Shown: positions 2,603-9,351 of the stretch, one piece after another | How positions within the stretch are numbered: the first letter of the stretch is position 1 | Layout: every line of letters starts with the position of its first letter | Virus record (IMG/VR): IMGVR_UViG_3300007533_000518 | Location: 1-10,502 of that record | Direction: 5' to 3' (one strand) | DNA: 10,502 nucleotides | Translations under genes and position numbers: made by a program | The notes under the pieces: model-generated | Databases searched by the model: none | Told to the model about the DNA's origin: nothing | Seen by the model: the letters and a program-made list of their open reading frames with translations, nothing else

Positions 2603-4372
2603 TTATCCTTCTATCTCACCAGCTGACAGTTGTCTTCCAGCAGGAGTTCTTGGAGTTGCTTCGGGTCTTCCCATACCAGCAACCTTAGTAGTAGGCTGCT
2701 CAGGAGCCATAGCCCCTGCTAACTGCTGTAGAGCCATATCCGCCATCATCTCATATAGATTAGCAGCTTCCATATCCTTAGCCTTATCTCTCAGATACGC
2801 TGCTTGTTCTCTATAGTACTGAATCAGAGCTATCATACTATTACTAGGATGTGCCTCGGCCTGGTCAGCTCTTCTTTGTGCTCTCTCCTGTAGCGGGTCT
2901 CCAATATCAGGAAATAACTTTCTAGATACATAGCTATAACTCAACGCAAACTCTGGGTCTAGCATATGAGCAGTAGTAGCCCTTTGGATTAGGTCTCCAG
3001 GTATCTCTATCTCATACTCAGCAGATACTACGCTATAGTCTGGAAGCTTATCAGGATATTTCCAGCCATAAGGTTTGATACCTCTATCTCTTATATCTGC
3101 TAAATCATCATTGTCTATATCAGATAGTGCATCTATTATAGCCTGATGAAAAGGCTTCATTACTTGATTTGCTGAGGCAGCTATCTGGCTCATAACATAA
3201 GCAGTTATCTGTCCAGCTACAGCTCCATGCATAGCCCAACTAACTCCTCCTCTTTGCATCATAGCTTCTAGGTCAAGCTGGGTACTTCTCAATTCTAATG
3301 GTATAGGAGGAGTAGCCAAAAAGTCTACAGAATCATCAGGCCCTCCTCTGAATATAGCCCCACGCTTAAATACATCCTCAGGCTTTACTATAGCATGACC
3401 ACTTCTACTACGCTCAAAGATTCTAGGTTGAGCAGTATCACGCAGAAGTTGTAGTGAGAATGTCCACCATCTATTCCAGGTCTTATAGATATTCTCATTA
3501 GTAGCTATAATAGACTGACCCAGCTCAGCCTTCCATCTATCTCCAGCCACTTTCTGAGTCTGTAGCTTTATTGTAGATGAGTATGTTGGTAGGTAGCCTT
3601 CTGTCAAAGTTCCCATATCAGGCAGACCACCTACAGGAGATATATAAATAGGAATCTTCTTAAATCTTGTAGGCTCAAACTTTACCAGACTATCGCCTAT
3701 GACTATAGCGTTCCATGCTATAGCAGTAAAGGGAAAATTGTCTGCTATCTCCATCCACCAATAGTCGTAAACTACTACATTGCGGCCTACAGTAGCCTGC
3801 CATTGAGGATAGGGACTAGATAATTTCCAGTCATTACGCTTAGCCAGATTAACAGCTTGTTTAGCTGTAGTAGCGTAAATATGAGCTACTTCATCTAATC
3901 CTAGCATATTATCCCACATAGGAAAAACCTCAGCAGGATTAAGAGGCTCCTTATAAGTTCTACTACCATCATCAGAGTTCATGCTGAGCATAGCATACCA
4001 TCCAGTAGCAAGCATGAAGCCTATGAAGGTTCTCAATATGCCTCGCCTAGGATTTGACCTACGAAATGTATTATCAGCATCCTTCCAACTGATATTAAAG
4101 TACCTATTAACCTGAGATACTGCACTTGCTACATTAAGGTCAGACATATCATAGTCTCTGACTCTATGAGGTATCTTGGTATCTAGAAGATGTAGTGTAA
4201 GATTATATAGTGCTCTGGGGTCATTACCCACAAAGGATTCCATCTTCTCCTGCTTAAGCTCGTCTATCATCTCTATAAGTCTATACCACCGCTTCATAGC
4301 CTCATTGCGAGGATTCCAGAAGGTCTTAAGCTCATTACAACGAGATACCACTTCATTTACATTTTGTTTCAT
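2603..4372 (-). CDS. Probable portal (head-tail connector) protein, 589 aa
   Basis: Size, position downstream of the large terminase, helical N-terminus (FWNPRNEAMKRWYRLI), and a low-complexity Q/A/P-rich C-terminal tail typical of portals. The start overlaps the upstream stop (ATGA). Confidence 0.7.
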   Translation of the reverse strand: MKQNVNEVVSRCNELKTFWNPRNEAMKRWYRLIEMIDELKQEKMESFVGNDPRALYNLTLHLLDTKIPHRVRDYDMSDLNVASAVSQVNRYFNISWKDADNTFRRSNPRRGILRTFIGFMLATGWYAMLSMNSDDGSRTYKEPLNPAEVFPMWDNMLGLDEVAHIYATTAKQAVNLAKRNDWKLSSPYPQWQATVGRNVVVYDYWWMEIADNFPFTAIAWNAIVIGDSLVKFEPTRFKKIPIYISPVGGLPDMGTLTEGYLPTYSSTIKLQTQKVAGDRWKAELGQSIIATNENIYKTWNRWWTFSLQLLRDTAQPRIFERSRSGHAIVKPEDVFKRGAIFRGGPDDSVDFLATPPIPLELRSTQLDLEAMMQRGGVSWAMHGAVAGQITAYVMSQIAASANQVMKPFHQAIIDALSDIDNDDLADIRDRGIKPYGWKYPDKLPDYSVVSAEYEIEIPGDLIQRATTAHMLDPEFALSYSYVSRKLFPDIGDPLQERAQRRADQAEAHPSNSMIALIQYYREQAAYLRDKAKDMEAANLYEMMADMALQQLAGAMAPEQPTTKVAGMGRPEATPRTPAGRQLSAGEIEG

Positions 4373-4632
4373 ACTATTACTCCAAGTACTAATGATACTG
4401 CTCCTGCTACAGAGAATATAAAGGTAGCAAATCCTACTACTGTTCCAGCAGAGTAGTAGTGATGCTCCTTCCTAATACTCTCAACAAGCTTATCTGTTGG
4501 TTCATACCTGCTCTGCCAAGGACAGTAACCATCAGCTATTCCCTCTATAAGAGCATGAACCTCATTAGGAGTGCTTAAGAACTCAGGAAGCTTAAGTCCA
4601 CCTAGAAACGCCTTAATACTAGAAAACTTCAT
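4369..4632 (-). CDS. Small protein (87 aa) with a C-terminal transmembrane helix
   Basis: Start re-called to the ATG at 4632 (MKFSSIKAF), which overlaps the protease TGA (ATGA). The C-terminus AGTVVGFATFIFSVAGAVSLVLGVIV is hydrophobic. The stop overlaps the portal ATG. Confidence 0.7.
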   Translation of the reverse strand: MKFSSIKAFLGGLKLPEFLSTPNEVHALIEGIADGYCPWQSRYEPTDKLVESIRKEHHYYSAGTVVGFATFIFSVAGAVSLVLGVIV

Positions 4633-5195
4633 ATTATTACTACTGCTCCTTCTAGCACATAGAATGGGAGGTCTTTGTCCTCCCAGTACCATATCTGGTC
4701 ATTCTGTGGCTCTAGTAGCATAATGTCCCTATTTGGAAAAACAGCCAAGTTGTAAGCATGACCAGCTTGATAATCTAGTACTACTCCAACCTGATTTATA
4801 CCATACTGGTCAGCATGAGCCTTAAAGCTAATAGCAAAGTTACCGCACATAAAGGACTTACGATACTCAAACTGGTCAACCCAATCCCAAGCTACAAACT
4901 TTATAAATCCTTCTTTGTTAGTTAGCCTAAACTCAGGGCCTAGGGGCAGACGGATAACATTAGCTTTGAAGTCAGCTAGTACAGTCTGAACCCACTCAGT
5001 GTCCTTCTCCACAACATACTCAAGCTCTGGTGGAGGAGGATGAGATAGCAAGCTCTCTAAGTATTCAACTCTGATATTAGCGTCATTCAAATCACCTGCT
5101 AGAGTATCTTTCTCTGTATAACACTTAGCAAGCTCACGATTACAGTTCTCGCTACATCCTAGAAAGCTGCATATGAATCCTTTTAATCCTTCCAT
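4629..5195 (-). CDS. Papain/transglutaminase-like cysteine protease (MOA agglutinin C-terminal-like domain), 188 aa
   Basis: Start re-called to the ATG at 5195, with AAGGAGA 7 nt upstream. Motifs FMCGNFA, GHAYN and LLEPQND give a Cys117-His146-Glu162 triad matching the DCDDFA/HAFN/IEPQTD pattern. The N-terminal part is Cys-rich and coiled-coil-like, followed by a HPPPP linker. Confidence 0.65.
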   Translation of the reverse strand: MEGLKGFICSFLGCSENCNRELAKCYTEKDTLAGDLNDANIRVEYLESLLSHPPPPELEYVVEKDTEWVQTVLADFKANVIRLPLGPEFRLTNKEGFIKFVAWDWVDQFEYRKSFMCGNFAISFKAHADQYGINQVGVVLDYQAGHAYNLAVFPNRDIMLLEPQNDQIWYWEDKDLPFYVLEGAVVII

Positions 5196-5211
5196 ACTTC
5201 TATCTCCTTTC

Positions 5212-6894
5212 CTACCATTCATCAGGCCATCCAGCCGAGCCTGCATAACCTCTCTGTACTGACTGAGCATTTCTGCATACTATAGCAATAGCACCAGCGT
5301 CGTGATGGTCATCTGCACCTACTACAAGGATTCCACTCTTGCTCATAGGATTTCTACGGATATTCTTACACTGGCTCCAGAATCGTATGTCCTGACAGTC
5401 TATATGTTCAAGGTGTCTACTAACCTCAGTAACCATATAAGGCTTAGTGGATAGATTAGTCTGCCAGCCTATTGCTTTTACAAGCTTACCAGTTCTTACA
5501 TCCTCCCTATAGTATAGGTCAGGATAATCTCTAAGATGACTAACTATATCTAGATTATCTTCTGGAGCTATTACCGCATTATTGTAGTAATGTGCTACTT
5601 CCTTCATCAGCAGAGCCATTTCCCACTCATCATAAAAGCCTGCTAGTGTAGCACAATGCTGCATAACTGGAGGAATTTCCTTATCATCCTTACTTTTATA
5701 GCCCTCAAGAAAGTGCCATACATGACCTACTGACTCAGACGTTTTCCCTTTGCCTGGGTCTATAGATACTATATAACCTAAACTATCTTCTCTGTCACAC
5801 CAGATATCTAATGTAGCAGATATAGTATCTTTAGTTCTTGAGTCAGTAGCTACTATATTCTTCTGGCTTTTAGCGGGTATGCAGTAGTGTATCTTATCAA
5901 CTATAACATCAGAGCTGTAAGCTTGGTCTCCTGCTACCAGAAAGCAATTCTCATCATCCTCAGGAAATTCCTGCTCAAATAGAAGAACAGTATCGCCACT
6001 TCTTCTAAGGCTAGCTATCTCAGCTTTCTTATACCTTCTCCATCTAAGCTTAGCCATAGCATCCTGTTCAGACATATCATAGATGTCCATGAGAACCTGC
6101 ATTAACAGTACTTCATCTGACTGGATATTAGATAGTGGGTCTTTATTGTCTTCATCTAGGCAGAATGGGTCTTCAGCATACATAATATACTCTGGTTGAA
6201 TATACCAAGGATAGAAGTGGTGCCTATAGACTGATTTGGCTACAGAAGTTCCTTCCTTAGCTGCTCTATACATCTCACAGAAATCATTATCTTCTCCATT
6301 AGGAGTAGATAATACTCTTATTTTAGTTCCAGGCTTAGCAGGAACTCTCTGAGCAGCTGATGCAAACACCAATTCATGCGTTCCTTCAAACCAGAATCCG
6401 TACTCATCTAGTAGTAGATTATGTATTGGCTCTCCCCTACCAATAGTATAGCTCCTAGAGCTAAAAATATACATGATAGAGTAGAATGGATGCTTAGTAT
6501 CCTTAGTTACCCATGTTAACTCCTCAGCGCTTTTATGCTCAAGCTTAGGAATAGTAGGAATCCTTCTTTCCAGAAACTGATGAAACCGCTTGGCTTTGAT
6601 GATAAGACGCTTAGCATTGGTCTCATCATAGCTAATAATAACTGATACAGTTCCACTAAGAGTTATATTATCAAGATAGAAATCAGCTAGATGAAGGGAT
6701 GTTGCCCCTACAGATGCTGGCTTAACATAGATATCTCTAAATGTAGAAGTCTGAAGCATATCTAGCTGAATAGGATTAAGGATGAACGGAACTAATCTTC
6801 GTTCCTTATCCTCTATCTGGAGTAAGGACTCCATAGTGAGCCGTCTATCTGAGAATAAAGCTTCAGCAGCTTCATCCTGCGATATAGTCTGCAT
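5212..6894 (-). CDS. terL: Terminase large subunit, 560 aa
   Basis: Adenine-binding LNPIQ motif, deviant Walker A (VKPASVGATS), Walker B (NLLLDEY), coupling motif (LSTPNG), FEQEFP motif, and RNase H-like nuclease acidic residues (IVSIDPG ... DDHHDA). AGGAG RBS upstream. Confidence 0.9.
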   Translation of the reverse strand: MQTISQDEAAEALFSDRRLTMESLLQIEDKERRLVPFILNPIQLDMLQTSTFRDIYVKPASVGATSLHLADFYLDNITLSGTVSVIISYDETNAKRLIIKAKRFHQFLERRIPTIPKLEHKSAEELTWVTKDTKHPFYSIMYIFSSRSYTIGRGEPIHNLLLDEYGFWFEGTHELVFASAAQRVPAKPGTKIRVLSTPNGEDNDFCEMYRAAKEGTSVAKSVYRHHFYPWYIQPEYIMYAEDPFCLDEDNKDPLSNIQSDEVLLMQVLMDIYDMSEQDAMAKLRWRRYKKAEIASLRRSGDTVLLFEQEFPEDDENCFLVAGDQAYSSDVIVDKIHYCIPAKSQKNIVATDSRTKDTISATLDIWCDREDSLGYIVSIDPGKGKTSESVGHVWHFLEGYKSKDDKEIPPVMQHCATLAGFYDEWEMALLMKEVAHYYNNAVIAPEDNLDIVSHLRDYPDLYYREDVRTGKLVKAIGWQTNLSTKPYMVTEVSRHLEHIDCQDIRFWSQCKNIRRNPMSKSGILVVGADDHHDAGAIAIVCRNAQSVQRGYAGSAGWPDEW

Positions 6895-7998: not shown

Positions 7999-8027
7999 AG
8001 TATAACATTGTGTACTAGTGTTGTCAA
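7999..8027 (-). promoter_or_regulatory. Sigma70/sigmaA-type promoter P1 (packaging/structural operon)
   Basis: TTGACA (8027-8022), 17 bp, TATACT (8004-7999), with an extended -10 TG (TGT-TATACT). Confidence 0.8.
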
Positions 8028-8074
8028 GGATACAAATACATATTATTATTTATTGTCATTAGTGAATAAGATGG

Positions 8075-8103
8075 TTGACAACTATATCCTGATATGATAT
8101 AAT
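8075..8103 (+). promoter_or_regulatory. Perfect-consensus sigma70/sigmaA promoter P2 (zinc-finger arm)
   Basis: TTGACA (8075-8080), 17 bp, TATAAT (8098-8103), with an extended -10 TG. An AT-rich UP-like tract lies at 8031-8055. Confidence 0.88.
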
Positions 8104-8109
8104 ATGGTT

Positions 8110-8304
8110 ATGAAGTGTGAGATATGTGGAAGAAGTAATCTAACTGCTAGAGAGCTAGCAGTACATAGAAAGCTTTTCCATAATGAACAGCCTCAGCAGA
8201 TTAGTCCTATGTCTGCTAAGGTATGTCCTGACTGTGGAGCTGCACTAGTTCTTCAGGAAGGTTGTGAGTATTGTAGCATATGTGGATACAGTAAATGTGG
8301 ATAA
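8110..8304 (+). CDS. 64-aa double zinc-binding protein: C2H2 finger plus NrdJ-like C-terminal zinc ribbon
   Basis: C-x2-C-x12-H-x4-H (CEIC...ELAVHRKLFH), then CPDCGAALVLQEGCEYCSICGYSKCG. The ATG at 8104 abuts the -10 box, so the ATG at 8110 is the likelier, leaderless start. Confidence 0.8.
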   Translation: MKCEICGRSNLTARELAVHRKLFHNEQPQQISPMSAKVCPDCGAALVLQEGCEYCSICGYSKCG

Positions 8305-8369: not shown

Positions 8370-8552
8370 ATGTTAGCTAAGTTAATATGCAAGTTATTCA
8401 AGCATAGATGGCTCTTTGAAATAGGAGTAATAGACCCGCCCAGTAAGAGCATCTGTCATATACCTAGTAGTGAAATTAAACTCATATTCTGTACTAGGTG
8501 TGGAAAGATTATATATGATAGAGAGGAGATACTAAAATTGACATCTGGCTAA
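8370..8552 (+). CDS. DUF1660-like small phage zinc-binding protein, 60 aa
   Basis: KLICKLFKHRW ... CTRCG matches the recalled family pattern KLxCKLFGHKW...CxRC. Confidence 0.6.
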   Translation: MLAKLICKLFKHRWLFEIGVIDPPSKSICHIPSSEIKLIFCTRCGKIIYDREEILKLTSG

Positions 8553-9007
8553 CTGTCTGTCGTAAAACTGTTCCTAAGTGTGCTTACTGCGGAGAACCTA
8601 TACACTTGGGGGAGATAATGGTAGCTGGCAGGATATGGAAGACTAGAGATGGAAAGGTAAGGAGATTTGTAAAGAACTTAAGATGGCACGGACAGAAGAT
8701 AGTAAACCCAGAAGAGCCTCCAATATGCTGCTGGCTAGAAGCAGGTCTAGAGTATCTACGAACTCACCCAAAAGAAGAGACAAGAGGAAGAAAGCAGCTT
8801 CAGCTAACAAAAGCACAAAAAATAGAAAGGTCAAAGATATCAAGACAAAGGGCAAGGTTAGTCCAAAAACTAAAGACACTAATGGAAGTTCCCCTAGCAA
8901 ATCAGGAGCAAAAGGATATAAACGATATAATAAAGATAGGAAGCCAGATAGAACAGTTGAAAGAGAGGATAATACCACTAGGAGGACTGCCTCCGAACTG
9001 GGAATAG
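8537..9007 (+). CDS. Zinc-finger plus basic coiled-coil protein, about 156 aa (probable ATT start)
   Basis: The frame is open from 8522. Extending upstream of the TTG at 8606 adds DIWLTVCRKTVPKCAYCGEPIH, which supplies a CxxC to pair with the later WH...CCW. GAGGAG (8523-8528) is 8 nt before the ATT at 8537. Confidence 0.65.
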   Translation: MDIWLTVCRKTVPKCAYCGEPIHLGEIMVAGRIWKTRDGKVRRFVKNLRWHGQKIVNPEEPPICCWLEAGLEYLRTHPKEETRGRKQLQLTKAQKIERSKISRQRARLVQKLKTLMEVPLANQEQKDINDIIKIGSQIEQLKERIIPLGGLPPNWE

Positions 9008-9351
9008 AATGGATAGGAGATTATTGCCCAGACAATAAACCCCATAACTTAATATGTATATATGAGTTGCATGGCGGAAGCTTATTTAGGTGTAGTAATT
9101 GTAGAAAGTATATATGGCTTCCTACATTTATTAAGGATGCTGCTAAGCTCGATAGTCTCATTGACAGCTATGGAACTACTACTGGGTATTGCAAGTATCT
9201 TGATACTAATAGAAGTGCTAAGATGCTAGTAGCTAAGCTGCAAGACCTATGGTATGCTAGAGCTAAGATTAAGGATGATAGGAAGTTTACTAAATTGGTA
9301 GTTAGAACTATGGAAGACAGCGAGTATGATAGGAGGAACAATGGCACTTAA
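8998..9351 (+). CDS. Small zinc-ribbon protein, about 117 aa (start uncertain, CTG candidate)
   Basis: The protein-like part of ORF 8683..9351 begins at GIEWIGDYCPDNKPH...FRCSNCRKY (C-x5-H...CxxC). GGAGG is at 8981-8985, with in-frame CTG at 8998 or ATA at 9004. Confidence 0.55.
   Translation: MGIEWIGDYCPDNKPHNLICIYELHGGSLFRCSNCRKYIWLPTFIKDAAKLDSLIDSYGTTTGYCKYLDTNRSAKMLVAKLQDLWYARAKIKDDRKFTKLVVRTMEDSEYDRRNNGT

Follow-up and report, generated by a model that had tools for sequence, protein, structure and literature searches.

Contig 3300007533_000518 of IMG/VR carries a small gene whose 64-residue product has a C2H2-type zinc finger in its N-terminal half and, as its tail, the six-cysteine finger with which many class II, vitamin B12-dependent, ribonucleotide reductases (RNRs; NrdJ) end. 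We analysed 10,502 nucleotides (nt) of this contig, referred to as the window, and number residues throughout on the 64-amino-acid (aa) form. About 70% of class II RNRs have the six-cysteine finger and cannot turn over without it, and its physiological electron donor is still missing (PMC5704485). In the window the finger stands outside any RNR, and the same fusion recurs on other phage-like contigs. We tentatively propose that RNR-less phages carry in this protein a stand-in for the RNR redox tail, one that might plug into the B12-dependent RNR of the host, or into its reductant, to control deoxynucleoside triphosphate (dNTP) synthesis early in infection.

Architecture of the protein

The open frame on the plus strand spans 8104-8304. 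Because every homologue opens with M-K-C, we take the ATG at 8110 as the true start, giving a product of 64 aa; the alternative in-frame ATG at 8104 falls within or upstream of the likely transcription start. The features of the gene are as follows.

8110-8304, plus strand: coding sequence of the 64-aa protein with two predicted zinc modules; stop codon at 8302-8304; homologues start M-K-C
8116-8181, plus strand: C2H2-type zinc finger, residues C3-H24, C3-x2-C6-x12-H19-x4-H24
8182-8223, plus strand: Q/P-rich flexible linker, residues 25-38, variable among homologues
8224-8301, plus strand: six-cysteine zinc finger of the NrdJ cysteine-rich domain (CRD) type, residues C39-G64, at the extreme C-terminus

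L16 lies three residues ahead of H19 in the C2H2 pattern. The tail reads C39-P-D-C42-G...E50-G-C52-x2-C55-x2-C58-G-Y-S-K-C63-G64, with its cysteines (C39, C42, C52, C55, C58, and C63) spaced C-x2-C-x9-C-x2-C-x2-C-x4-C. An earlier note on this DNA had described a C2H2 pattern, a Q/P linker, and a terminal cysteine array, and the translation of 8110-8304 agrees with that layout. Chance is excluded as the origin of both patterns: among 500 shuffled versions of the window (dinucleotide-type), the six-cysteine array arose not once and the C2H2 pattern at 0.014 per window. The gene encodes a mini-protein of two modules, each of which is predicted to bind zinc.

Homology of the tail to the C-terminal finger of NrdJ

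The tail is clearly homologous to the NrdJ C-terminal zinc finger and not merely a generic ribbon, as judged by profile comparison. The NCBIfam model NF006417 (vitamin B12-dependent RNR) matches residues 26-64 at E = 3.6e-9, on profile positions 721-759 of 759, and matches all 33 of the 33 family members described below. A second model, phrog_23565 (ribonucleotide reductase), is matched at E = 3.4e-7, again at its C-terminal end (positions 151-199 of 199). Alignment of the family to NrdJ C-termini with hhalign gives a probability of 99.3% and E = 2.6e-20, and covers residues 32-64 only. The earlier note had pointed to the likeness to NrdJ, and these searches confirm it. The note had also allowed that the tail might fit generic ribbons equally well, which it does not: bit scores are 35-55 to NrdJ versus 16-23 to TFS, L37Ae, and TFIIB-type ribbons, and with the family profile the TFS4, L37Ae, and S27ae ribbons score 19-23 bits versus 50-55 bits for NrdJ tails. 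The best generic zinc-finger or zinc-ribbon models in the NCBIfam search reach E = 0.005 at best. Pfam, which lacks a model for this finger, gives nothing beyond ribbons below threshold, at about 16 bits.

Nucleotide and protein searches place the same sequence at the ends of RNRs. Using tblastn against 50,697 phage records, we found that the tail aligns with the final codons of genes annotated as class II RNRs, in crAss-like phages, roseophages, haloviruses, and phages of Thermus, Geobacillus, and Moorella. Of the 99 matches, 60 were sampled evenly, and 43 of these carried an annotated RNR, the remainder being mostly unannotated records or large 'hypothetical' open reading frames (ORFs). A profile search of 1.84 billion proteins returned 2,764 matches, and each of the ten larger ones tested has an RNR barrel and/or a TSCPD domain. 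In the cellular set, which holds one genome per species, each of the 79 best tail matches lies at the end of a frame that either measures 730-1,780 aa or is truncated by the contig edge; the one match checked is an NrdJ with barrel and TSCPD domain. The tail thus recovers NrdJ C-termini, as the earlier note had expected of a search with the last 28 residues, but the hint at host taxonomy that it hoped for did not materialise, the nearest cellular tails being scattered. All four full-length NrdJ proteins found through the tail (P0051, P0064, P0094, and P0150) have a catalytic barrel interrupted by inteins, which carry homing endonucleases of the LAGLIDADG or HNH type.

The protein in the window is not itself part of an RNR polypeptide. 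Its RNR-like portion is confined to the last 33 residues, no TSCPD/IscU-like body precedes the tail, and a Pfam search of the protein gave no match to Ribonuc_red or TSCPD. No solved structure of a six-cysteine finger was present among the PDB sequences searched. Structure searches of PDB and BFVD gave non-significant matches only, of generic ribbon or C2H2 type; one of those in BFVD was a roseophage NrdJ with 55% identity over 29 residues. Other assignments were considered and rejected. The zinc domain of the MqsA antitoxin scored 16.7 bits against a cut-off of 30, with no helix-turn-helix domain, and matches to Lar, topoisomerase, PriA, and TFIIB ribbons were all below threshold.

Comparison with known redox tails

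About 70% of NrdJ sequences end in a CRD of 150-220 aa, the last 30 or so residues of which hold six fully conserved cysteines (Loderer et al., PMC5704485). In NrdJd of Stackebrandtia nassauensis these are C920, C923, C933, C936, C939, and C945; four have been modelled as zinc ligands, and in the same model C933/C945 form the redox pair responsible for re-reducing the active site. Activity with tris(2-carboxyethyl)phosphine (TCEP) needs all six, and electron transfer is possible between subunits (PMC5704485). The phage tail has the same six terminal cysteines with the same spacing, except for x4 instead of x5 in the last gap, and shares the signature C-P-D/E-C-G...E-G-C..C..C-G-aromatic-S-K/R-C. 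By analogy with the S. nassauensis enzyme, C39, C42, C55, and C58 would be the zinc ligands and C52/C63 the redox pair. The resemblance ends there, as the phage protein shares only the last 33 or so residues, without the catalytic barrel and without the TSCPD/IscU-like body of 150-220 aa, and its finger is fused to a C2H2 module and encoded by RNR-less phages.

A split form of the CRD is already known. In gamma-proteobacteria NrdJb is a separate protein consisting of an IscU-like/TSCPD domain and the finger, which binds NrdJa tightly and performs thiol-disulfide exchange (PMC4520616; PMC9669993). Like NrdJb of Pseudomonas aeruginosa, which acts in trans on the catalytic subunit NrdJa, the phage protein is a separate polypeptide ending in the six-cysteine finger. 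Unlike NrdJb, it lacks the IscU-like/TSCPD domain, which true NrdJb-like matches do carry, and its gene does not sit beside nrdJa; six NrdJ queries against 0.92 Mb of loci from the phage group detected no tail-less nrdJa next to it. The earlier note had envisaged a trans-acting mimic of the RNR tail or a redox-sensing regulator. Either would fit the invariance of the six cysteines described below, with NrdJb as a natural precedent.

Conservation and distribution of the fusion

The earlier note had asked whether the fusion recurs in other phages, and it does. We find it in at least 33 clusters, 56-99 aa long and at most about 50% identical to one another, and every context seen is a phage-like metagenomic contig. 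The C2H2 fusion is absent from the cultured phages searched and from the best 80 cellular loci. Of the short 'stand-alone' matches in the representative search, many seem to be NrdJ fragments, either contig-cut or NrdJb-like, and these were not counted as members. None of the family libraries that we used models the whole fusion, RNR models matching the tail only, and our searches of the searchable literature turned up no stand-alone CRD and no C2H2-CRD fusion in phages. What was known, then, is the six-cysteine finger and its split form NrdJb; what is new, as far as that literature goes, is the 64-aa fusion with a C2H2 finger in phages that lack an RNR.

C3, C6, H19, and all six tail cysteines are invariant in the 33 homologues and H24 is at least 90% conserved, whereas the linker differs in both length and sequence. 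The non-ligand residues typical of NrdJ (P, G, E-G, and G-aromatic-S-K/R) occur at similar frequencies in the family and in NrdJ, a comparison biased at positions 1-8 by a NrdJ set that was picked by similarity to the query. Judging from this alignment, none of the six cysteines is free from selection, not even the two that would be dispensable in a plain zinc ribbon. In three family members, P0006, P0009, and P0018, C-x2-C-x1-C replaces C-x2-C-x2-C between the fourth and fifth tail cysteines, a one-residue deletion inside the presumed zinc knuckle.

Since the RNR-like part is limited to the last 33 residues, the gene might be thought a non-functional remnant of a decayed phage nrdJ. That explanation is very improbable and effectively excluded by the pattern of conservation. 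The ORF is intact and has a promoter to itself, its N-terminal domain is distinct and conserved, and every metal ligand is kept across the diverged clusters while the gene occupies differing genomic positions in related phages.

The position of the gene is that of an early accessory gene. It stands at or near the head of an early operon in the window and in seven other loci (L003, L005, L011, L012, L013, L030, and L035), and this operon diverges from a gene of about 190 aa, TerL, and the portal gene. Elsewhere it is found among replication genes, which supports the role proposed here: in L014 it has a GTG start, lies directly upstream of DNA polymerase A, and is 8 kb downstream of an AAA_25 gene; in L017 it is 2 kb upstream of a polymerase gene; and in L165 a variant, in which the tail follows a different N-terminus, lies between a DNA ligase and a PD-(D/E)XK exonuclease. 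Close relatives with AAA_25 proteins 46-73% identical lack the gene at that locus, and for this reason we regard it as accessory. A MazG link of a 157-aa neighbour was rejected as a single-linkage clustering artefact.

CRD modules with yet other N-termini also occur in other phage contigs, away from RNR genes. L019 (9674-10147) encodes a 157-aa TSCPD-plus-finger orphan beside a papain-like protease and a Gp23-like capsid gene on a 205-kb contig, L024 (9845-10180) a 111-aa TSCPD-plus-finger orphan that adjoins an integrase, and L020 (9920-10147) a 75-aa orphan with the finger only. None of the three has an adjacent RNR gene. Together with the L165 variant, such orphans raise the possibility that the protein is a redox-sensing or thiol-disulfide mini-protein working on another partner, for which the physiological reductant of the NrdJ CRD is one candidate, or else a zinc-thiolate switch through which the redox state of the cell is sensed. 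The conserved six-cysteine array is in keeping with this, as is the finding that thioredoxin and glutaredoxin are both ruled out as the native reductant of the CRD (PMC5704485). However, no candidate partner gene co-occurs with the gene, and we consider this explanation unlikely.

The N-terminal finger and the predicted structure

The earlier note called the N-terminal module a classical C2H2 finger. The ligand pattern and the family profile support that name, which is nevertheless somewhat generous for the window protein itself, as it scores only 10-13 bits on the Pfam C2H2 models (zf-C2H2 10.2 bits, below the 25.2-bit cut-off). Among family members zf-C2H2 is the Pfam family most often matched, by 7 of 33 at E <= 0.01. 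Positions 2-25 of the 33-homologue profile match solved eukaryotic C2H2 fingers at E-values from 1e-6 to 5e-3, namely Aart (1e-6), SALL3/4 (about 1e-4), CTCF, and Zif268. With Zif268, SALL4, and CTCF the protein has in common the ligand pattern, a hydrophobic residue three before the first histidine, and a predicted helix with both histidines. It differs from them in being a single finger, in having Leu or Met in place of the conserved aromatic residue after the second cysteine, and in an unusual K-Y-F motif conserved between the histidines.

AlphaFold2 run on the family alignment gave a model with a mean predicted local distance difference test (pLDDT) score of 81 and a predicted template modelling (pTM) score of 0.37. 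A helix at residues 13-24, with pLDDT of 86-88, carries H19 and H24; DSSP assigns no hairpin to the N-terminal half. The tail has three short strands, and the linker is disordered, with pLDDT below 50 at residues 32-34. The low pTM suggests that finger and tail would behave as two independent modules. Foldseek matches of the model, to ribbons as to C2H2 fingers and for the N-terminal half as well, were non-significant. Superposition of the modelled tail on the TFS4 ribbon gives 1.0 Å over 27 residues, and the predicted fold, with two CxxC knuckles and three short strands, is that of generic ribbons such as TFS/TFS4, Rpb9, L37Ae, and S27ae. These ribbons are without the two extra cysteines and the E-G-C / C-G-Y-S-K-C signature of the phage tail. 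Some tblastn alignments began at residue 11-12, so that the N-terminal helix could have come from the last helix of TSCPD; this was rejected, given the extent of the hhalign alignment.

The strongest rival to an RNR-directed role is a small early regulator that binds nucleic acid. Both fingers would act on DNA or RNA (for example phage or host promoters, or replication intermediates), and the RNR-like ribbon would be a captured structural module unconnected with RNR. The N-terminal profile fits DNA-binding C2H2 fingers, the predicted tail fold superposes on ribbons of the transcription machinery (TFS4 and Rpb9-type), the gene is the first of an early operon, and genes for DNA polymerase, ligase, and exonuclease are nearby in other phages. 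However, the net charge of the family is near neutral (median +1, range -6 to +4), a purely structural ribbon could do without the two non-ligand cysteines and the NrdJ-specific residues, which nonetheless never vary, and the bit scores favour NrdJ over transcription-type ribbons. Taking both sides into account, we judge such a regulator rather unlikely but to be taken seriously.

Carrier phages without an RNR

The earlier note had suggested looking for a tail-less NrdJ in the phage genome; none was found. The six tblastn queries mentioned above matched only the tail of this gene in the 0.92 Mb of loci, never a catalytic barrel. Two contigs of about 42 kb were walked to 91-92% coverage (L013+L043+L132 and L159+L028+L012), and neither yielded an RNR or redoxin gene. 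A Pfam scan of the 45 ORFs of one genome, covered to 92%, identified DNA polymerase A, DNA methylase, AAA_24, AAA_25, HhH, and LAGLIDADG domains, and no RNR of any class, thioredoxin, glutaredoxin, or enzyme of nucleotide metabolism. Since the phage has no RNR, any RNR partner would have to be that of the host. TerL is at most 25% identical to that of any cultured phage.

An early protein directed at the host RNR could act in either direction. As a decoy, the free tail would fill the active-site cleft of host NrdJ or form a mixed disulfide with the tail of the enzyme, blocking re-reduction and with it host dNTP synthesis. The evidence from homology and conservation is the same for a decoy as for a protein that sustains synthesis. 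Yeast offers a precedent in Sml1, a small RNR inhibitor that acts at the step where the C-terminal tail of RNR regenerates the active site, in competition with the C-terminus of R1. The analogy is functional only: Sml1, a disordered protein with neither cysteine nor zinc finger, is unrelated to the phage protein in sequence and fold. In vitro, moreover, a free CRD is unable to support turnover (PMC5704485). However, for a phage that has a DNA polymerase and no RNR, blocking the only source of dNTPs looks self-defeating unless host DNA is recycled, and the scan of 45 ORFs revealed no nuclease or deoxynucleoside monophosphate kinase module. A decoy therefore seems improbable to us, and we lean toward support or capture of dNTP synthesis over its blockade.

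A possible role in host dNTP synthesis

Because the homology is specific to NrdJ, all six cysteines are under selection, the gene is early, and the phages have their own DNA polymerase and no RNR, we infer that the tail may keep the contacts of the NrdJ finger, with the RNR active site and/or with the reductant. The reading that we favour, possible but still doubtful, is that the gene encodes a free-standing class II RNR redox finger, flexibly tethered to a C2H2 module, which sustains or captures host dNTP synthesis. Transcribed from a consensus promoter, the gene would supply the protein as soon as infection begins, and the protein would fold around two zinc ions. The C52/C63 pair, positioned by the C39/C42/C55/C58 zinc site, could then exchange thiol and disulfide with the B12-dependent RNR of the host, either at the active site of that enzyme or at the enzyme's tail. 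The C2H2 finger might take the docking role that the TSCPD/IscU-like domain holds in NrdJ and NrdJb.

Several points weigh against this proposal. In every RNR context verified, a TSCPD/IscU-like domain goes with the finger, whereas the phage protein has none, and the conserved non-ligand residues could be purely structural for this type of finger. A C2H2 finger points more usually to nucleic-acid binding. When a CRD was expressed separately and supplied in equimolar amount, it restored no TCEP-dependent activity to CRD-deleted NrdJd in vitro (PMC5704485). The cellular NrdJ tails most similar to it come from Omnitrophota, Thermoplasmata, Planctomycetia, Gemmatimonadota, and Bacillota, a scatter without usable host signal, so that a CRD-type NrdJ in the host is a presumption.

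Whichever way the question is settled, the phage protein provides a naturally minimised finger of soluble size, under selection outside any RNR, in phages that depend on host dNTP synthesis. It makes two matters directly testable, namely whether the finger can act on an RNR in trans without the rest of the CRD, and what the finger binds. If the proposal is true, the protein would be the first viral mimic of the RNR tail and a ready bait for the missing electron donor of CRD-type class II RNRs; a protein that modulates the host RNR would also represent a new type of phage host-takeover protein. If the RNR is not modulated, the 'RNR tail' would prove to be a mobile redox or zinc module with wider uses.

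Promoter and transcript start

Two promoter-like sites lie upstream of the gene.

8075-8103, plus strand: sigma-70-type promoter, TTGACA, 17-nt spacer, TG-extended TATAAT
7999-8027, minus strand: divergent promoter-like site, 11/12, facing the packaging and structural genes

The earlier note had singled out the promoter ahead of the gene as the only one of perfect consensus, and the count upholds this: 8075-8103 is the sole 12/12 match to the sigma-70 consensus in the window, with the TG extension in addition. The same arrangement is kept in L005 and L011. From the end of the -10 box to the ATG at 8110 there are 7 nt, and 6 nt in L005 and L011, and no Shine-Dalgarno sequence is found between the two (8098-8112 in the window, and likewise in L005 and L011). 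Because of this short interval and the missing Shine-Dalgarno sequence, the first early mRNA in the window is probably leaderless. In six other loci (L003, L012, L016, L017, L030, and L035) the gene is preceded by another gene and has a normal ribosome-binding site of AGGAG type.

The two divergent promoters (7999-8103) are symmetrical. GTTGTCAA at 8020-8027 is the reverse complement of TTGACAAC at 8075-8082, so that the pair of -35 boxes constitutes an inverted repeat with 47 nt between its arms. Searches of the window for Rfam families and tRNAs gave nothing, either in the gene region or elsewhere, and a PADLOC search returned no matches.

Neighbouring genes

Downstream of the gene, 8370-8552 on the plus strand encodes a 60-aa cysteine-containing protein with a borderline match to DUF1660 (prophage protein; E = 4.7e-4) and a match to phrog_2670 (E = 1.2e-4). 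In L012 and L017 the gene upstream of the zinc-finger gene ends in a C-terminal motif like that of the 60-aa protein, from which we conclude that the order of the two small genes is swapped there.

The region 8606-9351 on the plus strand holds two overlapping frames, both of them coding-like. The TTG-started frame of 133 aa (8606-9007) is a real conserved gene, with 43% identity (E = 3e-35) to a 150-aa protein of L045. For the 222-aa ATG ORF at 8683-9351, homology to relatives is confined to residues 108-222. The half before them is basic and of low complexity and therefore probably an artefact of reading out of frame, which would place the start of the true second gene near 9004.

One uninterrupted minus-strand frame (1-2601) starts at 2601 and continues past the left end of the window, giving a product of at least 867 aa. 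Its counterparts in relatives lie downstream of the portal gene, are 1,378-1,758 aa long, and have no Pfam or PHROG match. In L016, an ORF of 927 aa (3721-6504, minus strand) contains the N- and C-domains of the terminase large subunit followed by a lambda-type portal domain, and is either a TerL-portal fusion or the result of a missed stop or frameshift.
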